This document shows, in pieces, positions 2,068-50,474 of a stretch of 64,000 bases of DNA. Under the pieces are notes generated by a model. It was not told the origin of the DNA and ran no database searches. It saw nothing but the letters and a program-made list of their open reading frames with translations. The DNA lies in contig NW_026867146.1 of the NCBI RefSeq assembly GCF_026571515.1, positions 1 to 64,000 on the forward strand. Direction: 5' to 3'. Each line of letters opens with the position of its first letter. Within the stretch, counting starts at the first letter, position 1. Source of the stretch: Ruditapes philippinarum (Eukaryota). A program made the position numbers and the translations under genes.

Positions 2068-5000
2068 TTACAAGAACGTTACGTATCTGTCAGACCGGAT
2101 AAATGCCGTCGTATTTGATAAAAGCAATGAGAGAACAGTTATATTAAAGTTTGCATTATCTTTGCTATTTGAAACATCTAGTTTTGGTATTTCTACGCAA
2201 GTTCGCGTCATGAGATATGGCGGGATATCAAGTTCTCTTATGTCGTCTGTATAAAAACCGTTCAGAGCTCTGTATTGTTTCATGGCATTGAGTGAATCAA
2301 ACAAGGCTTTATAAATATGCCATCTTTCAAACGTAAATTTCCTATCTGTGAACGTCCTTTTAAACTGAACGTGGCCCCATCGGTCTTGTAAATGACCGTG
2401 AAGGGTATAGCATGGTTGCCAGACCCACCATAGTGACGTTGCATTTGGGTCCTTTTCATATTCTCCATTTTTATCGACTCTTAAATATTGTTGTGGCCTG
2501 GCAAACTGCGAGAACCACACCTCGTTATTAAATGGGTACGGCTGTTCGCGGCGGGAATTTTCAGCCAGTTTTGTGAAAGGAAGCATTATCTCTAGCGACC
2601 AATACTTATCTCTGTCAGTAGGATCATTGACCGTTCCTTCCGTATAAATGGCCCTCTCTACACCAGAATCCCATTTCATATCATGCACCTTTTTACCGGC
2701 GGCATCCCAGTATGATTTGTACATAAGCAGATCCATAGCAACGCCTCGAGCATTGAGCTCCACTTGTTCATAATTAAACAATGTGCCATCTACATCAAGT
2801 AAAAGATCAAATCCATTTTCTGTCCATATTTTTGAGTCATGGGCTGAAAATTTCGCCCAGATATCATTTTCTTGGAGGTATACTCCAATATAAAGATTGA
2901 CATCGTCCCATCTGATTTTGAACTTTGTGACGTAATGAGGTTTTGGATATACCTTACTGCGCAGGTCAAGAAATGTTTCACTCCATGGAACCTAGTGAGT
3001 AAACAAAACATAAAGTTCATTAAGGACATGTTTTGCTAGCACAATTCATACTTACATGGAAACACAATTAAAAAAATGGGGAAAATGTTTGTGTGTTTGG
3101 GTTAGTTTGTTTAGGTTTGTTTCTCTCTTTCTTTTTTTCTTCATATTAGTCTTTTGCTAGCACATGTTATACTTACATGGAAACACAATTAAAAAAATGG
3201 GGGAAATGTGTGTGTCTTTGAGTTAGTTTGTTGTGGTTTGTTTGTTTGTATCTTTCTTTTTTTTCTTCATTTTAGTCCCTTGTCATATCTTGGCGGTCAT
3301 TGCAATTAACCGGTTTTCCTGGATATCTAACACAGTAATTTTCAATTTCTGCGTAATTCACCGACTACTGAATCCCACGCTATTTTTGAATCGGCGATAA
3401 GAGGAAAATACCTCGAAATGAATTTCAAAGAAAACTAGGCGGTATACAAAATAATTAATTGAAACACAAACTTCATTTCTGATTTGTATCGTAGCTGATA
3501 TTTGCCATGTCTTATTTTCGCGCAGCGAAGCGAATATACGAGATGACACAAATCATCTACAGCACGTTATGATACAAAAATAATCAAAATTTTGTCATAT
3601 ATCTATGACTTCAAAGCCATTAAAAAGTAACAGATATGTACAATGATTTTGGTTAACATCATATGTGTACAGTTATAACTGATAAAAAAGAACGTGCACA
3701 ATGTCTTCAAGGAAAGGATGCTGTTTAATTAAAATTAATTTTTTTCTTGCTACTACCTTTGAGATTTATTTTATATGTTTGGCTAATGAAAAGTATTCTT
3801 AATATTTCCTCGTATTAAGAACAAAACGATCTAATGATATAATCATGTTTTTTCATATGTGTATAAAATTCTCAAAACATAATTATGTTAATATATAAAT
3901 AACACATGGGTTTGTGGGTAACAGTAAAAATATCATCCCGAGGAAAATACTGTTACCCGAGGCGTAGCCGAGTGTAACAGTATTTTTACGAGGAATGATA
4001 TTTTTACTGTTACCCACAAACCCATGTGTTATTTATTTTATTACCCCGAACAAAAATACTGTGATGATCTGAAATAAAAAAAAATATTGTCAACTAAATC
4101 TAACTGTAACAAAAATAAACCAAGAGTAACAATAACTAAACTGTCCTTACCTTTTAAGTTTTAAGTGAACTTTAGGCCTACTTGAGAAGTTTTCTTTTTC
4201 TTTTATTCTTTAAGCAAGTGATGATATATACAAATCATAAACATACAATAAGCTAGGTTTTATTTAGAAAACAAAACACTAACCCATTTACACGGTTATG
4301 ATCTGTGAAATCTTATCCTTCTGTTTCTAGAATATTCTTAGCATGGTTTTTGACAAAATATCGATGATATCCTATGTCTGTCCACCATATCTGTAACATT
4401 TCACTGATTAGAATTGTTAAAACTTAAATAATCCTTTGTTGCATGCTTAAATCGTCTGCATTTATTTATTTATTTATTTATTAGTTACACTTGTATTTTT
4501 TGGATTNNNNNNNNNNNNNNNNNNNNNNNNNNNNNNNNNNNNNNNNNNNNNNNNNNNNNNNNNNNNNNNNNNNNNNNNNNNNNNNNNNNNNNNNNNNNNN
4601 NNNNNNNNNNNNNNNNNNNNNNNNNNNNNNNNNNNNNNNNNNNNNNNNNNNNNNTTATTATTATTTTCTTTTTTGTAAAATTAACTTTTAGTACATAATC
4701 AAAACCTTTACCTACCTCTTTCCATGCTTCTTCGTCAAGTTTTCCATCTAGCAAGATTGTTTTTTCGTTCAAATGATACGCAATATAATGCCTTGGTAGT
4801 TCGTAGTTCCAACAATCCGACTCGCGTTTTAGACATGTAAACTTTCCGCTATTTGTTTCCTCATATCGCTTAATATACAGTCGGGTAATGTTGGAGTAGG
4901 AAAACGACTCTCGGCATAGCGGTCCGATTACTTCCGCTTTTGTGGTCTTCGAACTGCGGTTACCATCCAATGCTTGCCGGTGACCAGATACATATCCTAT

Positions 5001-12613: not shown

Positions 12614-14495
12614 ATGCCAAGTTATATAGTGGTTGACGTAGAGACAAGAAAAGTAATTATAACATGTACGGTTACAGGACTTGTTATGTTTGCAATAGGA
12701 ATCGGAATTGGTTACGCTTCCGGTAAAGGTTCATCAAATACGGAATCACCAACTGCAAGCGTTGCCGAAGCAATACGTGCTACGTGTAGCGGTTCTGCTG
12801 CTCAGACGTCCTCTGGAAAACTTTACTTTGACCGATTTGTACAAAGACACAGTGAAAAGTATGCATGTGTTAAAACAGAGGAAGAATGCTGGAACTTGGG
12901 ATTGCCAAGAAATTATATTGCTTACCACTTGAATGGCAAAACAATCACGATTGATGGGAAATTAGACGATGACGCTTGGAAAGAGGTAAACATGTTTTAC
13001 CACTATTCTTTTGATATTGACACTTTGTCACTTTCCAGTCAGCCCGTGTTGCTTATCACTCAGTTGAACCAGGTCGTGCCAGCAGGCCTTCGGATATACA
13101 TATACATATAATAATCACCAAAACGTCAGCATTACGACGTGAGTCGTTGAGAGTACTTATATCGGACTGCTGAATTTAGTGGTGTACATCCTTGAGAAAG
13201 ATTTTACAAAATGCAGGTCGAGGCACATTTTATTAGAAATGTTATATCTTAAACAAAATAATTTATATCCTGGTTGAACTAAAGTCATTTATTCTAGTAA
13301 AGTGCAGTATCATACCGTATAATAAACATATGTACTGTACTACGGACCTTATATCAAAATAGCATTGTGGTAACCTTCCAGTCTGTTCCTGAACGGATTT
13401 CAGCCCCTGGCTTCGGCTGGGCCAACTTGGAAGTTAGTATGTAACAATGGTATGAGGCCGTCATTGCTGTTTACTTTTCCTTAAAAAATGTTTTAATAAA
13501 TCACGATTCCGTATTTTAAAGGGGTCACAATTTTATCTTTACAGGTGCCGTGGAGCGAAACTTTCGTTGACATGCGAAGTTCAGTTTATCCAAAACCATA
13601 TCTAGATACGAAGTTCAAAATACGTTGGGACGATGAACGAATGTATATAGGTGTTTATGTACAAGAAAATAATTTATGGGCGACAATTACCACACAAGAC
13701 GCGGCGATCTATAAAGAAAATGGCGTCGAATTTCTTATGGACGTAGATGGGTCTTTGTTCAATTTCAAACAAATGCAGATAAACGTCTTGGGTACAATGA
13801 TGGACCAACTGTTCTATAAATCATCTTGGGATAGCCCTGATGTACAGGTGAAGTTCAAGGACTGGCATCCTGACGTAAGGAAAGCAGTTTACACAGACGG
13901 TACTGTAAATACACCAGGTGACGAAGACAAATACTGGAGTATTGAAGTCTCGCTTTTGTTTGCGAAACTTGGTGAAAGGTCACAACGCGCGCAGCCAAAT
14001 CCCGTCGAGAACGAGGCTTGGTTTATACAATTAGGAAGATCTGAACAAAATTTGACAGTTGAGAATGGGCGCTACAAAAAAGTTCCAAGATCTAAACCAC
14101 AGTGGTGGTCATGGCAACAATGTGACACCATTAATTTACTTTTACAAGATCGCTGGGGTTTGGTGCAGTTCAAGAAAAACTTGTCAGACAAGAAGTTTCG
14201 ATTTGATAGATGGCATATTTACAAAGCCTTGTTTGATATGAAGGACGCTATGAAGAAATTTCAATCTGTAAATGGGAAGTACACGACTGACATAGAAGAG
14301 CTTGATGTTCCGCCATATTTATTGTCAGGAACTTGCGTTGAAGTTCCCGAAGTAAAGTATACTTACAGAAATAACGAAACGGCATTCAACCCGGTTACAA
14401 ATCCTATTACAGGTTTTGAGGTAACCGTTAAGTCGAAGTTGATTTCACATAAACCGGCACACATCCGGTCGGATAGATACGTTACATTCCAGTAA
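12614..14495 (+). CDS. Gene C, type II membrane CBM9-like protein, 440 aa (exon 1 12614..12985, exon 2 13545..14495)
   Basis: GAG|GTAAAC donor and TTTACAG|GTG acceptor. The joined protein reads PRNYIAY..ITIDGKLDDDAWKE-VPWSETFVD..TKFKIRWDDERMYIG..WSIEV..WSWQ..QDRWG, a CBM9-like pattern. Confidence 0.9.
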
Positions 14496-15986: not shown

Positions 15987-18009
15987 ATGCCAAGTTATAT
16001 CGTTGTTGACGTAGAGACAAGAAAAGTAATTATAACATGTACGGTTATAGGACTTGTTATGTTTGCAATAGGAATTGGAATCGGTTTTGCTTCCGGGAAA
16101 GGTTCTTCAAATACTGAGTCACCAACTGCAAGCGTTGCCGAGGCAATACGTGCTACTTGTAGCGGTTCTGCTGCTCAGACGCCTTCAGGAAAACTTTACT
16201 TCGACCGATTTGTGCAAAGACACAGTGAAAAGTATGCATGTGTTAAAACAAAGGAAGAATGCTGGAACTTGGGATTGCCAAGAAATTATATTGCTTACCA
16301 TTTGAATGGCAAAACAATCACGATTGATGGGAAATTAGACGATGACGCTTGGAAAGAGGTTAGAAACAATATTTTACAAAGTTAAATATAAAAAGAATTC
16401 GGTAAACAAATATTTATTTTAATGCATATAAATGATTAAATCTTGTTAAAAAGATCTAACCGAGTTTTGAAGGAAACTACATATGTATTAACCATGTAGA
16501 ATTCATACTTTGCATCCTTTTGTAAGCTTATCAAAATTTAACAGTGACTTTTTCCTGTGAACGCTGTACAACTGTGGTGAATTTCTAGAACACTATAACC
16601 CCATTTACCTGACCCACTTTTATATACGTTTCTCAAAAGGTAAAGGAAGTTAGGCCAAAACCTTTACATCAATTAATGATTTCTTCACTTGCAATTGAAA
16701 AACGATTCCATTTCGAAAATAGTTTCTATTATGTACGTGTTAATTCTTTTTTATTCATTATTTGTTTGTACGCACTGTATTTGTGGTGATATATATAATT
16801 GAGCTGCGCCATGACAAAACCAACATAGTACGTTCGTGACCAGCATGGATCCAAACCAGCCTGCGCATATGCGCAGTCGGATCAGGATTCATGCTGTTCG
16901 CTATCAGTTTCTCTACTTATAGGGTTTGTAAGCGAAAAGCATGGATCCTGATCAGACTGCGCGGATGCGTACACTGGTCTAAATCCATTCTGGCCGCAAA
17001 CACACTATGTTAGTTCTTTCATGGCGCGGCTCATATGTGTGCCGTCTAATATTTACAGGTGCCGTGGAGCGAAACTTTTGTTGACATGCGCAGTTCAGTT
17101 TATCCAAAACCATATCTTGATACGAAGTTCAAAATACGTTGGGACGATGAAAGAATGTATGTAGGTGTTTATGTACAAGAGAAAAATTTATGGGCGACAC
17201 TTACCTCACAAGACGCGTCGATCTGGAAAGAAAATGGCGTCGAATTTCTTATGGACGTGGATGGCTCATTGTTCAATTTCAAACAAATGCAGATAAACGT
17301 CTTGGGTACAATGATGGACCAACTGCTATATAGATCTCCATGGGATGGTTGGGATCCAAGTATAAGTGTAATGGACTGGCATCCTAACGTAACGAAAGCA
17401 GTTTACACAGACGGGTCTATAAATACCCCGGGTGATGTGGACAAATATTGGAGTATTGAAGTCTCGTTTTTGTTTACGAAACTAGCCGAGAGGTCACAGC
17501 GCGCGCAACCAAAGCCCGCCGAGAACGAGGTTTGGTTTATACAATTAGGAAGGTCTGAACAAAATTTGACAGTTGAGAATGGGCGCTACAAAAAAGTTCC
17601 AGAATCTAAAACGCAGTGGTGGTCATGGCAACAATGTGACACCATTAATTTACTTTTACAAGACCGCTGGGGTTTGGTGCAGTTCAAGAAAAACTTGTCA
17701 AGCAAGAAGTTTCGATTTGATAGATGGCATATTTACAAAGCCTTGTTTGATGTGAGGGACGCTATGAAGAAATTTCAATCTGTAAATGGCAAAAATACAA
17801 CTAACATAGAAGAGCTGGATGTCCCGCCATATTTATTGTCAGGAACTTGCGTTGAAGTTCCCGAAATAAAGTATACTTACAGAAATAATGCAACAGCATT
17901 CAACCCGGTTACAAATCCTATTACAGGTTTTGAGATCACCGTTAAGTCAAAGTTGATTTCACATAAACCGGCTCACATCCGGTCGGATAGATATGTCACA
18001 TTCCAGTAA
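15987..18009 (+). CDS. Gene D, type II membrane CBM9-like protein, 440 aa (exon 1 15987..16358, exon 2 17059..18009)
   Basis: GAG|GTTAGA donor, TTTACAG|GTG acceptor, open frame, paralogous to C. Confidence 0.9.
16800..17033. mobile_element. Hairpin MITE in gene D intron (same family as 53399..53635)
   Basis: Long inverted arms tgagctgcgccatgacaaaaccaacatagt / actatgttagttctttcatggcgcggctca; absent from the introns of E, F and G. Confidence 0.85.
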
Positions 18010-32926: not shown

Positions 32927-34722
32927 ATGCCGAGTTATATCGTGTTTGACGTTAAGACAAGAAAAGTAATTATAATATGTACGGTTATAGGATTTCTTAT
33001 GTTTGCAATAGGAATTGGAATCGGGTACGCTTCACGAAAAGGTTCGTCAAATACGGAGTCACCAACTGCAAGCGTTGCCAAGTCAATCCGTGCTACGTGT
33101 AGTGGTCCAGCGGCCCAGACGCCCTCTGGAAAACTTTTCTTCGACCGATTTGTGCAAAGACACAATGAAAAGTATGCATGTGTTAAAACAAAGGAAGAAT
33201 GTTGGAACTTGGGATTGCCCAGAAATTATATCGCTTACCACTTGAATGGCAAAACAATCACGATTGATGGGAAATTAGACGATGATGCTTGGAAAGAGGT
33301 TAGAAACAATATTTCACCTACTTGTACATGTGAAGGGAATGGAAGCATATACATAAATGATTAAATTTTATTTTTATTATTTATAAGATCTAATCACGTT
33401 GTGAAGGAAACTACTTATGTATCTTCTGTATAGAAATTGTATCCAAATGTAAGCTTGTTAAAATCTTACAGTGAATAGTACATTTTAATAAGAAAGTACG
33501 ATAAGCCCTATGGTATACACAACGGTGTCAAATATCAGTGAGACCGGTGTACATGTTGCGATCAGCCCACTTTAATATACGTTGCACAAGTGGTGGAAGA
33601 AATTAGGGAAAAACCTTTCGAGCCAAAAACATATTCATTTATGTCTTGCTCGCTTGGAATTCAAAAGTAATTTAGTAACGAGTATAATTTTATTAACAAT
33701 CTAAGATTTTTTATTTTTTGTATATGCATTTTAAATATATATGATAACATATTTGGTGGGTCGTCTTATTTTTACAGGTGCCATGGAGCGCAACTTTCGT
33801 TGACATGCGCAGTTCAGTTTATCCAAAACCATATCTAGATACGAAGTTCAAAATACGATGGGACGATGAAAGAATGTATGTAGGTGTTTATGTACAAGAA
33901 AAGAACTTATGGGCGACACTTACCACACAAGACGCGGCGATCTTTAAAGAAAATGACGTCGAATTTCTTATGGACGTGGATGGGTCTTTGTTCAATTTCA
34001 AACAAATGCAAATTAACGTCTTGGGTACAATGATGGATCAACTGTTCTATAAATCTCCCGGGGATGATGTGCAGGTAAAGTTCAAAGACTGGCATCCTGA
34101 CGTAAGGAAAGCAGTTTACGCAGACGGTACTGTAAATACACCAGGTGACGAAGACAAATACTGGAGTATTGAAGTCTCGCTTTCGTTTGCGAAACTTGCC
34201 GAAAGGTCACAGCGCACGCAGCCAAATCCCGTCGAGAACGAGGCTTGGTTTATACAATTTGGAAGATCTGAACAAAATTTGACAGTTGAGAATGGGCACT
34301 ACAAAAAAGTTCCAGAATCTAAAACGCAGTGGTGGTCATGGCAACAATGTGACACCATTAATTTACTTTTACAAGACCGCTGGGGTTTGGTGCAGTTCAA
34401 GAAAAACTTGTCAGACAAGAAGTTTCGTTTTGATAGATGGCATATTTACAAAGCCTTGTTTGATATGAGGGATGCTATGAAGAAATTTCAATCTATTAAT
34501 GGGATAAGCACAACTAACATAGAGGAGCTGGATGTGCCGCCATATTTATTGTCAGGAACTTGCGTTGAAGTTCCCAAAATAAAGTATACTTACAGAAATA
34601 ATGTAACAGCATTCAACCCGGTTACAAATCCTATAACAGGTTTTGTGGTAACCGTGAAGTCGAAGTTGATTTCACATAAACCGGCACACATCCGGTCCGA
34701 TAGATATGTCACATTCCAGTAA
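32927..34722 (+). CDS. Gene E, type II membrane CBM9-like protein, 438 aa (exon 1 32927..33298, exon 2 33778..34722)
   Basis: Same splice sites and phase; open frame; 2-codon deletion in the variable loop. Confidence 0.9.
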
Positions 34723-37382
34723 CTCTAAACCAACATACCAATCGCAACTTTTAGGGCTTTTCTGTCAGACATTGGATAAGGATTATTATAATAGCCGGCT
34801 TTTTTTCGATTGCCAACATTAAGCAGAGATGATCGACAATTTCGATAAAGACGAATTTCATGTTTCTATATCTTACTGCCAGTATATAATTCTGCAGTAA
34901 GAAAATTCCCGATATATAAATATTATAGCTATAACTACATGTACCACGTTTTTTCATAAATATTTTAATAAGTCTGGGCTTATCCGTTCCTTTGTAAAAA
35001 TAGTTTAATTTGGGGTTCCTTCAAATACGGTTCATTATTCATTTTTCTATGCTCACCATCTTTAGAAAGTAGTATAAAATTATTTGCCATAAAAGTAGCA
35101 AATAAAAGTAGTATTTCAACTTCCATACCAATCATTAAATCACTATATTTTGTACTAATTTCCAAATGGCAACAGAGGCAAAAGATGGCTTATGTTATTG
35201 GCCAATGAGTATCGTTTTGAAAACTATAAAGAACATTCAGAGTAAACATGCTTTTTAAAGCTTTTGAGAAATAGAAAAAAAACATTTCGTGGGCATAATG
35301 TGCCTATATGCGACATTGCAACAGTGTGAAACTAGATGTCAGTATGTCGCCTGCAAGGCGCGTTTTTTTAATTGTACAATTCAACCTTTAAATCGGACCC
35401 ATTTGTAAGATGAAGGTTTTTGGTAGTGTTTAAAAGTTGTTGCGCTTGAACCTGAAAAGGGTATTGCTTAGCAGAGGGTCTTTCTGTAGAGGTTGAACTA
35501 TATTTAACATGCACTGCTTTCACAACTAAACTTGTATTATATCTTTATATCATACATAAAAAGCATGTGTGAGTGTAACCGTTGTTGCTTCATTTTATTA
35601 TTTTTTATTTTTCTTTTCTTTTTTTTTCTTTCTTTTTTTGAAAATAAAAACCCTTTCTGATTCCTTATGTGAGGGAACTTTACAGCTAGCTAACAGATTA
35701 TCTGTGGTTCTACTCAGATGCCCGTTTGTGTCTGATATGGATTAATCACATTTTGGCGATCTGTTTAAATGAGAGCCCTCGAACAAATAAGACCCTGATC
35801 CCCAAACTTGTTCCACCATTTTCTTTTAACATAAGTCATGCTGTCTCAATCATAAATTTTAGTTTATTTCCACTTTAAAAGTTGAATCACCATAAATTTT
35901 AATTAACAAAGAAATGGTATACTGAAGCAAAAACTAAACTACACAATTGACTTTATTTGAGTATGATGCAATTCTTGTACAGGTAAAAGAAAGAACATAG
36001 GGGGGTTGCCCCCTTGCCGAGTGTTTTGATGTTCTTTCTGTAGAATATAAGGCAAAATTAAAATACGTTCACTGCTATCACTATTTAAATTTCCAGAAGT
36101 AACGAGCATCGTTATTCCTTCTCCTACGTCACATTATGTAAACCCCCAAAAAATGAGCCAATCAATAAGCAAGTTCTACAAGTGAACGCACTCTGCATGT
36201 ATGTATACATACGATTTAACTCTGGCACATTTTCAACAAAACGGTGTCCACACTATGAAACTATATACTAGTGTAGCACTACTCAGTCGACTGTGTTTAT
36301 TTGAGTATAATTCAAATATTCAACCAAATGCATTTTAAGCCAATATATTTGAAGAAAAGAATTTAGGAAAAGTAAAGAGTCAAGATTCAAGTAATAATTA
36401 ATATGCTAACTGCGATAAATGGCCGATTTGACTGTATTAAATAAAGTGTATTTATAACGAACATTCTGCGTTACATTTTCTTTAAAAAGAAGTGTAATGA
36501 AAATTCGCTTGAATCTTGAAGCATTCTGCTAAACAGACAACATATCAAACAATAATAGTTATTGAAATCGTGGACCAAGTTGTCTCGTATCTAAAAAAGA
36601 GCGTTCCAATTATATGAAAAGATTCAGAATTAGTTAACTTACCATTATTCAAAAGATATATAAGACAAAATAAGCGCACGTGAGCTGTCGCAAGAAAGAG
36701 ATCAGTATACCGAAAACACAGATTTGGTGAACTTTTTGTTAACAAGATGAATTCGTTATATACTTGAAACATGCCTAGATCCCTGACCTGTCTTATTCTA
36801 ATTATCAGATTAGTGGATACAACTCAACATTTTTGATAACAAAAGAGCGCAAGTCAATGTTTTTGGTTAAATATATTGTTATTTAAATTCAAGGTCGCTG
36901 ATTTGGAACACTTTTGATCGTCGTATTTTCACATCGACAGCACGACAAAGCGCCAAGCAGTGCGGTGTCTGACTTTCGTCTTGTCGTCCTGTCGATAACT
37001 ATACGCCCTCGTGATATAATTCCTCGCATCCAAACTTCTAACAGTGAATTTATTGAGCGATAAAATCACTGTTTGGGATATATTATTTCTTAAATAACAT
37101 ACAGTCTTAATTATATATTTTTAAATACAGAAATAAGCGGACACGGAGATGTTGATCGCTTACTTCTATGTTTACTACGCACGGTGACAAGTATTTTTAA
37201 ATATCATCTCACGAAACATCAAATATATGTTATAAAAAAATGAAGAATTGTTTGATAATGCATGTCGGACTTAATATGACATTGTGTCATATATTTTTTC
37301 CCTTTGTTACATTCCCACCATACATGTGTTAAAAAATAATATTTCAATTACTATATGTATTTTCTTCCATTTCATACCAAGA

Positions 37383-39329: not shown

Positions 39330-41093
39330 ATGCCGAGTTATATCGTGTTCGACGTTAAGACAAGAAAAGTAATTATAACATGTACGGTTACAGGACTTGT
39401 TATGTTTGCAATAGGAATCGGAATTGGTTACGCTTCCCGAAAAGGTTCGTCAAATACGGATTCACCAACTGCCAGCGTTGCCGAGGCAATACGCGCTACG
39501 TGTAGTGGTCCAGCGGCCCAGACGCCGTCTGGTAAACTTTACTTCGACCGATTTGTGCAAAGACACAATGAAAAGTATGCATGTGTTAAAACAAAGGAAG
39601 AATGTTGGAACTTGGGATTGCCAAGAAATTATATTGCTTACCACTTGAATGGCAAAACAATCACTATTGATGGGAAATTAGATGATGATGCTTGGAAAGA
39701 GGTTAGAAACAATATTTCACCTAGTTGTTAAAAACATGTAAAATGAATGGAAGCATTTATAGACCTTAATATCTAAATGATTGAATTTTATGTATATTAT
39801 TTGATAAGATTTAACGCGTTGTGAAGGAAACTACATATGTATCTACTATGTAGAATTCATACTTTATATCCAATTGTAAGCTTATTAAAATCTTTCAGTG
39901 AAAGTACATTTTAATAAGAAAGTTCGATAAGGCCATTTCACAGGACCTTTTAAATACGTCACACAAGTGGTGTAGGGAATTATGGTAAAACCTTTCGAGC
40001 CAAACACATAATGTTCACTTGGAATTGAAAACTATTTTAATAACGAGTATAATTCTATTAACAATCATAGTTTTTATATATATTGTATATGCACTTTAAA
40101 TATATATGAAAACATATTTGGTGGGCCGTCTTGTGTTTACAGGTACCATGGAGCGAAACTTTTGTTGACATGCGCAGTTCAGTTTATCCCAAACCATATC
40201 TAGATACGAAGTTCAAAATACGATGGGACGATGAACGAATGTATATAGGTGTTTATATACAAGAAAATAATTTATGGGCGACACTAACCACACATGACGC
40301 GGCGATCTCGACAGAGAATGGCGTCGAATTTCTTATGGACGTAGATGGGTCTTTGTTCAATTTCAAACAAATGCAAATTAACGTCTTGGGTACTATGATG
40401 GACCAACTGTTCTATAAATCTCCTTATGATAGTCCTGATGTGCAGGTATGGTTCCAAGACTGGCAACCTGACGTAAGGAAAGCAGTTAACACAGACGGTA
40501 CTGTAAATACACCGGGTGACGAAGACAAATACTGGAGTATTGAAGTCTCGCTTTCGTTTGCGAAACTTGCCGAAAGGTCACAGCGCGCGCAGCCAAATCC
40601 CGTCGAGAACGAGGCTTGGTTTATACAATTTGGAAGATCTGAACAAAATTTGACAGTTGAGAAAGGGCAATACAAAATAGTTCCAGGATCTGAATCGCAG
40701 TGGTGGTCATGGCAACAATGTGACACCATTAATTTACTTTTACAAGACCGCTGGGGTTTGGTGCAGTTCAAGAAAAATTTGTCAGACAAGAAGTTTCGAT
40801 TTGATAGATGGCATATTTACAAAGCCTTGTTTGTAATGAGGGACGCTATGAAGAAATTTCAATCTGTAAATGGGAAGTATACAAATAAAATAGAAGAGCT
40901 GGATGTTCCGCCATATTTGTTGTCAGGAACTTGTGTTGAAGTTCCTGAAATAACGTTTACATTCAAAAATAATGCAATAGCATTCAACTATGTTACAAAT
41001 CCTATAACAGGTTTTGTGGTAACCGTTAAGTCGAAGTTGATTTCACATAAACCAGCTCACATTCGATCGGATAGATACGTCACATTCCAGTAA
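39330..41093 (+). CDS. Gene F, type II membrane CBM9-like protein, 440 aa (exon 1 39330..39701, exon 2 40143..41093)
   Basis: GAG|GTTAGA donor, TTTACAG|GTA acceptor; open frame. Confidence 0.9.
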
Positions 41094-44000
41094 TTCTAAA
41101 CAAACATATCAATGGCAACTTTTCGGCCCTTTCCGTCAGTCTTCGGATTAAGTTTATTATTAGTAATAGCCGAGGTGTTTCCGATTGCTAACATTAAACA
41201 GAAATGATCGACAATTTCGATAAAGACGAATTTCATGTTTCTATATCTTACCGCCAGTATATAATTCTGCAGTAAGAAAATTCCCGATATATTTATATTA
41301 TAGTTATAACTACATGTACCACGTTTTTTTATAAATATTTTAATATTTCTGCGCTTATCCGCTCCTTTGTAAAAATAGTTTATTTTGGGTTTTCTTCAAA
41401 TTCTTCAAATATTCATTTTTTCTATGCTCACCATCTGTAGAAAGTAGTGTGAAATTATGTGTCATAAAAGTAGCAAATAGAAGAAGTATTTTAACTTCCA
41501 TACAAATCATTAATCACTATATTCTGTATTAATTTCCAAAAGTCAACAGAGGCAAAAGATGGCTTAGGTAATTAACCAATGAGTATCGTTTTGAAAACTA
41601 TAAAAGAACATCCAGAGTAAACATGCTTTTCAAAGCTTTTGAGAAATAGAAATAAAAATATTTCTTGGGCATATTGGGCCTTTAAAGCGACATTGCAACA
41701 GTGTGAACCTAGATGTCAATATGTCGCCTGCAAGGTGCGTTTATATAATTGTACAATTCAACCTTTAAAGAGGACCCCTTTGTAAAATGAAGGTTTCTGG
41801 TAGTGTTTAAAAGTTGTTGCTCTTGAATCTGAAGAAGATATATTGCTTAACAGAGAGTTACTCTGTAGAGGTTGAACAATATGTTACATACACTGCTTTG
41901 ACAACTAAACTTGTATTATATCTTATTATAAATTAAAGTATGTATGAGTGTAACGGTTGTTGCTTCAGTTTTTGTTGTTTTTTTTGAATCCATATTTGAG
42001 GATATCCATCTAGCTAACAGAACATCTGTGCTTCAACTCAGGTGCCCGTTTGTGTCTGAAATGGCTTAATCACATTTTCGCGATCTGTTTAAATGAGAAC
42101 CCTCGACCAAATCAGACCCTGACCTTCAAACTTGTTCCACCATTTTCTTTTAACACAAGTGGCGCTGTCTCAATCATAAATATTAGTTTATTTGAATTTC
42201 CACTTTTAAAAGTTGAATCACCATAAATTTTAATGAACAAAGAAATGGTATACTGAAGAAAAACTAAACTACACAATTGACTTTATTTGAGTATGATACA
42301 ATACATGTACAAGTAATAGAAAGAACATAGGGGGTGTAGCCCCCCTTGCCGAGTGTTTTGATGTTATTTCTGTTGAATATTAGGCAAAATTAAAACACGT
42401 TCACTGCTGTCACTATTTAAATCTCCAGAAGAAAAAGAATCAAATGAGCGAGCATCGTTTTCTTATTCTGACGTCACATTAGGTAAACCCCCCAAAAACT
42501 ACAAGTGAACGCACTGTGCATGTATGTGTACATACGATTAAACTCTGGCACATTTTCAACAAAATGGTGTCCACACTATTTAACTATATACTAGTGTAGC
42601 ATTTCTCAATCGACTGTGTTTATTTGAGTATAATTCAAATATTTAGGCAACTGTGTTTAAAGCCAATATTTTTGAATAAAATCTAACTTGACCAAAATGT
42701 ACAAAGATTTTAGGAAAAGTAAAGAGTCAAGATTCAAGTAATAATTAACATGCTAACTGCGATAAATGGCCGATTTGACTGTATTAAATAAGGTATATTT
42801 ATAACGAACATTCTGCGTTACATTTTCTTTAAAAAAGTTTAATTAAAATTCGCATGAATCTTGAAGCATGCTGCTAAAAGGATTACATATTAAACAATGA
42901 TAGTTATTGAAATTGTGGACCAAGTTGCATCGTATCTAAATAAGAGCGTTCGAATTTTATGAAAAGATTTGGAAATACCTAACTTATCATTATTCAGAAG
43001 GTAAATAAGACAATATAAGCGCACAAGAACTCAACTGTCGCAAGAAAGAGGTCAGTACAGTATACCGAAAAAACAGATTTGTTGAACTTTTTGTTAGCAA
43101 GATGAATTCGTCCTATACTTAAACCCTAACCCAATGCCTAGATCCCTGACCTGTCTAAGTGTAATTATCAGATTAATGGATACAACATTTTTGATAACAT
43201 AAGAGCGCATGACAATGTTTGTGGTTAAATATATTGTAATTGAAATTCAAGGTGGCTGATTTGGAACCCTTTTGTGCGTCGTATTGTCGCTAGCGGCAGC
43301 ACGACAAAGCGCCAAACGTAGTGTTGTCGGCCTTTCGTTTTGGCGTCCTGTCGCTTACGATACGCCCTTGTGATATAATTCCTCTTATCCGAACTTCAAA
43401 CAGTGGTTTTATTGAGCGTGACCGCGGCGTCTAGTAGATATGCATTTGTCCATACAGCAATGGAGGAAATTTTAGACTTGATTTTGTGTATTTTCTCCTT
43501 TTTTTAACAAAATGCATTTGTCTATACAGCAATGGAGGAAATTTTAGACTTCATTTTGTGTATTCATGTCACAGTGCTTTAAAGGGGTTAGAATAAACGT
43601 TTAACTGAAGTGATGTATCATGTACCATGTATGAATATCATGTTCTTTTTATCATTATCTAATTTTATCTACATAATAAATAACGTGCCAATGAGCCAGT
43701 CTATATTCGATCGTTTTAAAACTTGACCGTTGAGAGTGGAACGACTGAGGCAGTGTCACTCACTTTATTTGCTCCGCCTCTGTTGAAGTTCGGCTCCGCC
43801 TTAAATTGTCACCAAATTTGATATGATGTTCCGTATGCTAGCTTTCAGTCTTCGTGGGGCGGAAGGGAACCAGGACAACTTTGACCAATATCACGTGTCG
43901 AATCATTAAATTACAAGTTACAAAGCCTAAACCACGCCCACTATCAGAGAGGCGGTTCTCCCTCAACCGTTAAGAAAGTACGCCAAACTCTGCAGAACGG

Positions 44001-48678: not shown

Positions 48679-50474
48679 ATGCCGAGCTATATAGTGTTTG
48701 ACGTAAAGACAAGAAAAGTAATCATAATATGTACGGTTATAGGACTTGTTATGTTTGCAATAGGAATTGGAATCGGGTACGCTTCCCGAAAAAGTTCGTC
48801 AAATACGGAGACACCAACTGAAAGCGTTGCCGAGTCTATCCGTGCTACGTGTAGTGGTCCAGCGGCCCAGACGCCCTCTGGAAAACTTTACTTCGACCGA
48901 TTTGTGCAAAGACACAGTGAAAAGTATGCATGTGTTAAAACAAAGGAAGAATGTTGGAACTTGGGATTGCCAAGAAATTATATTGCTTACCACTTGAATG
49001 GCAAAACAATCACGATTGATGGGAAACTAGATGATGATGCTTGGAAAGAGGTTAGACGCAATATTTCACCTAGTTGTTAAAACATGTAAAAATAATGGAA
49101 TCATTTATTCATCTTAATACATATATGATTGAATTTTATGTACATTTTGTATATTATTCAATAAGATCTAAGCGCATTGTGAAGGAAACTACATATGTAT
49201 ATCTACTATGTAGAATTGATACTTTATATCCATTTGTAAGCTTATTAAAATCTTACAGTGAATAGTACATTTTAATAAGTACGATAAGCTTAATTTTATA
49301 AACAATTTCACATACGATGCAGAAGTGTTGGAGGAAATTAGGGTAAAAACTTTCGAACCAAACACATAATGTCTGGTTCACTTGGAATTGAAAACATTAA
49401 ATAACGAGTATTCACGTATTTCTATTAACAATATTTTTATATTTACTTTTATTTTTTATTTCTTGCATAAACACTTTATATAAATATGATAATATTTGGC
49501 GTGTCGTCTTGTGTTTACAGGTGCCATGGAGCGCAACTTTTGTTGACATGCGCAGTTCAGTTTATCCAAAACCATATCTAGATACGAAGTTCAAAATACG
49601 ATGGGACGATGAACGAATGTACATAGGTGTTTATGTACAAGAAACGAACTTATGGGCAACACTTACCACACAAGACGCGGCGATCTGGACAGAAAATGGC
49701 GTCGAATTGCTTATGGACGTAGATGGGTCTTTGTTCAATTTCAAACAAATGCAGATAAACGTCTTGGGTACAATGATGGACCAACTGTTATATAGATCTC
49801 CTTGGGATGGCGGCTGGGATCCTAGTAATAGTGAAATGGCCTGGCATCCAAACGTTACGAAAGGAATTTACGCAGACGGTTCTATAAATACCCCGGGTGA
49901 TGAGGACAAATATTGGAGTATTGAAGTCTCGTTTCTGTTTACGAAACTAGCCGAGAGGTCACAGCGCGCACAGCCAAATCCTGCCGAGAACGAGGCTTGG
50001 TTTATACAACTCGGAAGATCTGAACAAAATTTGACAGTTGAGAATGGGCAATACAAAAAAAATCCAGGATCTAAACCGCAGTGGTGGTCATGGCAACAAT
50101 GTGACGACATAAATTTACTTTTACAAGACCGCTGGGGTTTGGTACAGTTCAAGAAAAACTTGTCAGACAAGAAGTTTCGATTTGATAGATGGCATATTTA
50201 CAAAGCCTTGTTTGATATGAGGGACGCTATGAAGAAATTTCAATCTGTAAATGGGAAGTATACAACTAACATAGAAGAGCTGGATGTTCCGCCATATTTA
50301 TTGTCAGGAACTTGTGTTGAAGTTCCCGAAATAAAGTTTACTTACAGAAATAACGAAACAGCATTCAACCCGGTTACAAATCCTGTTACAGGTTTTGAGG
50401 TAACAGTTAAGTCGAAGTTGATTTCACATAAACCAGCTCACATTCGGTCGGATAGATACGTCACGTTCCAGTAA
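48679..50474 (+). CDS. Gene G, type II membrane CBM9-like protein, 441 aa (exon 1 48679..49050, exon 2 49521..50474)
   Basis: Same splice sites and phase; open frame; 1-codon insertion in the variable loop. Confidence 0.9.

Follow-up and report, generated by a model that had tools for sequence, protein, structure and literature searches.

Tandem CBM9-fold membrane proteins in Ruditapes philippinarum: mosaic paralogues with likely divergence at a predicted sugar-binding cleft

The carbohydrate-binding modules of family 9 (CBM9) hold sugars between two aromatic residues, which are Trp71 and Trp175 in TmCBM9-2 and Tyr89 and Trp191 in CkCBM9.3 (PMC8280721). The specificity of these modules shifts with the clamp aromatics and with the residues that neighbour them (PMC8280721). 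Here we describe five paralogous genes, C to G, which form a tandem array in a stretch of 64,000 nucleotides of DNA from Ruditapes philippinarum (positions 1 to 64,000 of contig NW_026867146.1; hereafter the window), and which encode membrane proteins with a CBM9-fold ectodomain. What varies amongst the clam copies resembles what tunes these modules, and divergence of the predicted binding cleft amongst the paralogues seems likely. On balance we consider it probable that a constrained scaffold carries near-neutral loops at the predicted sugar clamp, that gene conversion limited to the exons has shuffled variants between the copies, and that the paralogues would differ in glycan preference or affinity.

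All five paralogues lie on the plus strand and each has two exons, with the reading frame intact in 5/5 copies. In copy C exon 1 (12614..12985) codes for a cytoplasmic tip, a transmembrane anchor, a Cys-containing stalk and the first CBM9 strand (...IDGKLDDDAWKE motif), and exon 2 (13545..14495; 951 nt) codes for the remainder of the CBM9-fold domain and for a C-terminal alpha/beta domain. The other copies are D (15987..18009; exon 1 15987-16358, exon 2 17059-18009, 951 nt), E (32927..34722; exon 1 32927-33298, exon 2 33778-34722, 945 nt), F (39330..41093; exon 1 39330-39701, exon 2 40143-41093, 951 nt) and G (48679..50474; exon 1 48679-49050, exon 2 49521-50474, 954 nt). The best database matches to the window are NCBI proteins of the same species. 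Three of these are identical to copies C (P0057), E (P0060) and F (P0001, the protein that was modelled) and support the two-exon structure with a product of 438-440 residues, the translation of exon 1 of copy C forming the N-terminus of P0057. Contigs from two RNA-like public runs (X5 and X14) connect 12985 to 13545 over a GT..AG intron, and copy C is therefore transcribed and spliced as modelled. The beginnings of the 3' flanks of copies E and F (34735-34764 and 41106-41135) match the loose ends of contigs in one RNA-like and one DNA-like run, from which at least one further paralogue is probably transcribed. In what follows exon 1 and exon 2 were analysed apart, while full-length proteins were used as given by the databases.

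The products of C to G are type II single-pass membrane proteins in which a CBM9-fold ectodomain is followed by a small alpha/beta domain. Exon 1 supplies the N-terminal transmembrane helix, which spans residues 9-35 in an AlphaFold2 model, and the stalk. Against the Pfam profile PF06452 (CBM9_1), for which the cut-off is 23.4 bits, the full-length products of C, E and F reach 30.3, 27.9 and 24.9 bits; exon 2 alone falls below the cut-off at 18 bits. Of the 185 positions of the profile the match takes in only 1-78. The AlphaFold2 model of copy F (predicted local distance difference test score (pLDDT) 84.3, predicted template modelling score 0.79) shows the CBM9 beta-sandwich at residues 99-335. 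It superposes on TmCBM9-2 from Xyn10A of Thermotoga maritima (1I82, also 1I8A and 1I8U) with a Z of 19.8 and a root-mean-square deviation (rmsd) of 2.4 Å over 179 of 189 residues, and on CkCBM9.3 (7NWN) with a Z of 20.6 and an rmsd of 2.3 Å over 178 residues; the best Z, 21.5, was obtained with 4JPQ (rmsd 2.8 Å, 206 residues). A broad profile built with relatives from scallops, a gastropod, a chiton and bacteria (alignment A5) finds 7NWN with an E value of 2.5e-9 and 1I82 with one of 5.8e-9. By sequence the C-terminal half of the domain matched none of the CBM9 structures except 4JPQ, and this weakly and with the broad profile. With TmCBM9-2 and CkCBM9.3 the clam proteins have in common the beta-sandwich, the N-terminal motif and the aromatic at the clamp position.

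Relatives of the clam proteins are present in scallops, in the gastropod Gigantopelta and in the chiton Liolophura (P0063, P0064, P0067, P0068 and P0072-P0090). In the ESM Atlas the closest clusters consist of CBM9-family proteins from bacteria; these have about 330-350 residues, which is approximately the length of the ectodomain. A homologue of 477 residues from Mya arenaria (P0020, annotated as '6PGD-like protein, partial') also has a PF03446 domain; its gene model is probably a fusion or a mis-merger. A search for CBM9 in bivalves in the literature library at hand returned nothing.

The preliminary description of the window had singled out three short patches of exon 2 as the places where C to G differ and had seen in them diversifying selection on a ligand-binding surface. 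The fifteen patch peptides and the exon 2 lengths that it gave (951/951/945/951/954 nt) are exact, the combination of the three patches is unique in each of the five copies, and in the five-copy comparison indels are confined to patch 2, all of them in frame. Patch 1 of copy C (DAAIYKENG, 13698..13724, plus strand) contains the codon at 13710-13712, a tyrosine, which is column 56 of the exon 2 alignment and the predicted first arm of the clamp. The equivalent plus-strand codons give Trp in D (17224-17226), Phe in E (33943-33945), Ser in F (40308-40310) and Trp in G (49686-49688). Column 56 falls on Trp71 in both HMMER alignments to 1I82 and on Tyr89 in the first of two alignments to 7NWN, the second being offset within a low-confidence stretch. 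In the AlphaFold2 model a short helix between two strands lies at this position, as published for Tyr89 (PMC8280721). In the rest of the family this column is Trp in 26, Tyr in 8 and Phe in 3 sequences and is never non-aromatic (alignment A3), and the aromatic of the first arm is present in C, D, E and G and missing in F.

Patch 3 of copy C (KKVPRSKP, 14076..14099, plus strand; D 17590-17613, E 34303-34326, F 40674-40697 and G 50055-50078) forms a hairpin running into the motif QWWSW (14100..14114, plus strand), which is invariant in C to G and of which the last Trp is column 191, 5 residues downstream of the end of the patch. This residue is Trp in 49/50 family members and nearly invariant across the molluscan and bacterial relatives in A5. 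It is aligned, weakly and with the broad profile, to the Trp of the C-terminal SWSP of 4JPQ, and in the model the final short helix of the domain comes after it, matching the published placement of Trp175 and Trp191 (PMC8280721). Given its near-invariance, its position before the last helix and the alignment to 4JPQ, the Trp of column 191 is likely to be the second arm of the clamp and we treat it as the candidate, though the region of Trp175/Trp191 in 1I82 and 7NWN was not reached by any sequence alignment. If there are no indels in between, Ile164 and Asn172 of TmCBM9-2 would correspond to columns 180 and 188. Patch 2 (copy C, YKSSWDSPDVQVKFKDW, 13815..13865, plus strand; D 17329-17379, E 34048-34092, F 40413-40463 and G 49791-49844) is a long loop with a pLDDT of 55-70. 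Judged from strand order only, it follows the third strand beyond the clamp helix and may lie near the position of Gly108 in TmCBM9-2. The description of the patches as part of a ligand-binding surface thus agrees with the CBM9 fold, with the position of patch 1 on Trp71 and with the predicted adjacency of patch 3 to the second arm; diversifying selection, the other half of that proposal, finds less support, as set out below. With the patches real, and patches 1 and 3 at the predicted clamp, divergent sugar binding would seem the most likely meaning of the differences.

The concentration of the differences in the patches is only partial. Amongst the 317 codon columns of exon 2, 135 vary, 74 in the amino acid and 61 silently only. 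The columns in which the residue varies are clustered (index of dispersion 2.53, compared with 0.73 in permutations, P < 2e-4), with the densest 18-codon window at patch 2 (14 variable columns, where 8.7 are expected), and the silent-only columns are spread evenly (P = 0.24). The clustering is thus significant, but just 22 of the 74 variable residues lie inside the three patches. Further clusters, which had not been listed, are found at columns 241-255 and 271-285; they belong to a second variable set at 14270-14495, within the C-terminal alpha/beta domain, which takes up about residues 340-440 of the model. Here the Tyr that 42/50 relatives conserve at column 247 is replaced by Asn in D and by Ser in E. 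Nor are the variable columns enriched in aromatic residues, which occur in 14/74 variable and 35/243 invariant columns. The variable columns are not enriched in the loops of the model either (34/155 as against 39/161). They are the columns that evolve fast throughout the family, with an entropy of 2.13 bits compared with 1.16 bits (p = 2e-12).

Nor are the flanking blocks almost invariant at silent sites, as had been stated, over most of the exon; the mean pairwise synonymous divergence (dS) of exon 2 is 0.24. The statement is true of the surroundings of patch 3 alone. In a sliding window the proportion of silent differences (pS) is 0.27-0.39 at columns 76-135, around patch 2 (13767-13946 in copy C), and drops to 0.06-0.12 at columns 151-240 (13992..14261 in copy C, plus strand), a trough that contains the most conserved motif as well as patch 3; everywhere outside columns 151-240 it is 0.19-0.39. 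This low-dS block appears to have been homogenised recently.

The copies are mosaics. Exon 2 contains 57 parsimony-informative sites, which support the mutually incompatible splits DG, DE, CE, FG, EF, CD and EG, and the agreement between neighbouring sites exceeds that of every one of 5,000 permutations (P < 2e-4). Three segments of the exon yield three different trees. In exon 1 the dS values group (C,D) and (E,F,G), and exon 2 is star-like. The non-coding DNA records an older history, one of a hierarchical kind. Amongst E, F and G the introns diverge by a K of 0.15-0.19, and that of D lies 0.44 away from these three. As the K of the E, F and G introns is near the dS of the exons, conversion is not required for the similarity of these three copies. 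Copy C is the telling case. Its exons are 91-95% identical to those of the other copies, with an exon dS of 0.20-0.33, and its intron (12986-13544) is by p-distance as far from the introns of D to G as a shuffled control; its flanks cannot be aligned to the others, and the similarity ends 10-16 bp beyond each exon. The simplest explanation is that gene conversion limited to the exons has made the copies mosaic, with replacement of the intron of copy C as the alternative. An insertion of a repeat or transposon as the source of this intron was rejected, the sequence being single-copy in the genome and showing no resemblance to the introns of the outgroup copies.

The preliminary description had patch 2 as different in every copy, and there are indeed five peptides, but these are largely variants of two haplotypes, D/G and C/E/F. 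The 25 informative sites in support of a D and G grouping all fall in columns 90-155, a block that extends over 17326..17520 in copy D and 49788-49985 in copy G (plus strand). Within the block is a core of 27-30 nt (17347-17373 in D and 49809-49838 in G) which codes for GWDPSISVM in one haplotype and SPDVQVKFK in the other, and which is saturated at silent and replacement sites alike; in 5/6 pairs the D/G core resembles the C/E/F core no better than a shuffled sequence does. When the core is left out, the block has a dS of 0.44 and a ratio of replacement to silent divergence (omega, dN/dS) of 0.29 between the haplotypes, and a dS of 0.15 and an omega of 0.34 within them; outside the block the values between the same groups of copies are 0.20 and 0.20. 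The diversity of patch 2 is therefore mostly a single replaced segment on an old block common to D and G, and not five independent diversifications. An origin of the D/G core by a compensated frameshift was discarded, as the alternative frames hold stops and gapped alignments score about as well as shuffles in 5/6 pairs, the exception being off-register. Searches of the 1.4 Gb assembly for a donor of the D/G block or of its core, one with 114 nt and one with a 27-nt pattern (up to 3 mismatches), returned D and G only. The raised dS beside the core could have arisen through selection against homogenisation or because the non-homologous core mechanically blocks conversion.

Taken as a whole exon 2 is under constraint. 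Codon models were fitted with our own likelihood program, in which the one-ratio model M0 gives an omega of 0.28, in agreement with the Nei-Gojobori value of 0.27 (mean pairwise dS 0.24, replacement divergence (dN) 0.064). Outside the patches omega is 0.18 by counting and 0.10-0.25 when the patches and the rest are fitted as separate partitions by maximum likelihood. In the latter fit patches 1, 2 and 3 have omegas of 0.83, 1.04 and 1.04. The joint profile for the patches peaks at 1.0 (approximate interval 0.6-1.5), and the fit worsens by about 6 log-likelihood units at 0.45 and likewise at 2.0. The patches therefore evolve at about the neutral rate, which does not bear out the idea that they are under diversifying selection. 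A patch dN/dS of 1 or less was what the preliminary description had set as refuting it, and at the level of the patches its strong form does not stand. Site models point the same way. Comparison of M2a with M1a over the whole exon gives a likelihood ratio test statistic (LRT) of 5.08 (p = 0.079), and over three pre-set segments, each on its own tree, LRTs of 4.73, 0.42 and 1.20, or p = 0.38 when summed; neither is significant.

From these results a mechanism may be put together. The scaffold is held by purifying selection, at an omega of 0.1-0.25. Replacements accumulate at a roughly neutral rate, with omega about 1, in a small number of loops in which, or next to which, the two predicted clamp aromatics lie. 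Conversion, working block by block and confined to the exons, would shuffle the variants amongst the copies and would have erased the silent divergence around patch 3. One block of 66 codons would have been left in the form of two old haplotypes, D/G and C/E/F, its core of 27-30 nt having been replaced in a single event. The paralogues would then be predicted to differ in the preference or affinity for glycans, with a first arm that is Trp, Tyr or Phe in four copies and lost (Ser) in F.

The strongest competitor holds that diversifying selection on the glycan-binding surface keeps the loops distinct in spite of homogenising conversion, and so maintains a germline repertoire of specificities. 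It is a possibility to be taken seriously, though we think it the less probable one, and several observations speak for it and against near-neutral loops. The clamp codon (Y/W/F/S/W) has undergone at least 4 replacement changes; it alone stands out in the segment tests, with an omega of about 8 and a posterior probability of 0.98 that omega exceeds 1. Under M2a 10% of the sites of the whole exon are given an omega of 2.2, and the sites that rank highest, columns 56, 177, 104, 95, 186, 247, 183 and 102, are in or beside the patches. In the low-dS block M2a is preferred to M1a with an LRT of 9.73 (p = 0.008), against an LRT of at most 4.6 in 18 simulations under M1a, and patch 3, measured against the local silent rate, has an omega of 2.95 (p = 0.036 against 1). 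The doubling of dS around the core of patch 2 is also what selection against homogenisation would be expected to leave, patches 1 and 3 are placed at the two predicted arms of the clamp, and five sequences give the tests little power. The signals of an omega above 1 are limited to the clamp codon and the low-dS block around patch 3. Selection there is suggested by the data, as is a role of selection in driving the differences between the loops. On the other side, in addition to the non-significant site tests and the rejection of an omega of 2 for the patches, the one significant block was chosen after the dS profile had been seen and is one of about six tests, and the uneven genealogies that conversion produces may inflate omega there, as recombination does in tests of this kind. 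The divergence of patch 2 is accounted for by one replaced segment and an old block with an omega of 0.3.

The data on alleles also bear on this. The patches are unchanged in an allele of C (P0058) and one of D (P0059) from other samples, and two more studies supplied transcript contigs of C in which they are identical; in this very small sample of two alleles and two transcript contigs no somatic or allelic hypervariability was seen. A McDonald-Kreitman test on public DNA-like runs proved unusable. Most of the 'variants' carry the letter of another paralogue and are thus cross-mapped short contigs. The likening of the patches to the complementarity-determining regions of antibodies goes beyond the evidence, in view of the selection tests, the single event behind patch 2, the unchanged alleles and the fact that the same positions vary throughout the family.

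A related reading, in which the membrane-anchored array is under conversion and selection against homogenisation preserves the variants of the clamp (Trp, Tyr, Phe or none, and two types of loop) as a germline repertoire for glycan recognition, seems to us rather doubtful. If true, such a repertoire may serve in the sorting and uptake of algal and microbial polysaccharides or in the recognition of microbes. That the differences mean nothing for function and reflect only relaxed constraint after duplication in loops that tolerate change, with some copies drifting towards the loss of binding, is improbable: the patch omega of 1.0, the low confidence of the model in the patch 2 loop, the coincidence with positions variable in the whole family, and candidates for drift such as the clamp Ser of copy F (in A3 all other sequences are aromatic there), the Gly at column 95 of E and the lack of the conserved Tyr at column 247 in D and E are all in its favour, but the frames are intact in five of five copies, no copy departs from an omega of 0.1-0.25 outside the patches, transcription and splicing are seen for copy C, the 3' untranslated region of a second paralogue occurs in an RNA-like run, and the clamp position has kept an aromatic in 4/5 copies.

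The array belongs to a larger family in the genome. A divergent sixth paralogue (2074..2991, minus strand), with 55% identity in exon 2, lies in the same window and served as an outgroup, and older relatives are found on further contigs of the assembly. The sixth paralogue is nearly identical to a locus on a separate contig (L008, contig C9706), and the same holds for another pair (L009 and L010, on C9393 and C844); such pairs are probably haplotigs or overlapping contig ends, and the copy number of the family in the assembly is therefore likely to be inflated. The window contains a run of N at 4507-4654.

Coming from CBM9 as it is known in bacterial enzymes that act on plant cell walls, the family is of interest because the fold is here the ectodomain of an uncharacterised and recently expanded group of molluscan membrane proteins, and it is at the predicted sugar clamp that the paralogues differ. 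If the copies bind different glycans, the array would amount to a small natural experiment on how the specificity of CBM9 is tuned, and its products would be candidate receptors for particle selection, digestion or the recognition of microbes in a farmed clam. It also offers a clean case in which exon-limited gene conversion and local divergence coexist.

Compared with the CBM9s of bacterial xylanases, the clam protein is a type II membrane protein from an animal and not a module of a secreted enzyme, and the identity between them is 14-17%. The clam domain is also about 48 residues longer, with extra loops, and is followed by the added C-terminal alpha/beta domain. Three calcium sites and the binding of reducing ends of sugars are further features of CBM9. 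In BACUNI_03838 of Bacteroides uniformis (4JPQ) the sequence SWSP...FG is aligned to WSWQ...WGLVQF of the clam. This protein and the bacterial 'carbohydrate-binding family 9-like' proteins, of about 330-350 residues, have no such membrane anchor and do not occur in diverging tandem arrays. For the arrangement of the genes the nearest likeness is with other families. Amongst invertebrates, tandem families of lectin-like proteins such as the FREPs and the C1q-domain proteins have paralogues with differing binding loops, between which gene conversion exchanges sequence. A pattern of this kind is familiar, and the claim of selection is in the present case unproven. The clam array resembles the FREPs and C1q-domain proteins in its recent tandem expansion, its conserved scaffold, its variable loops and its mosaic exchange; it differs from them in having the CBM9 fold.

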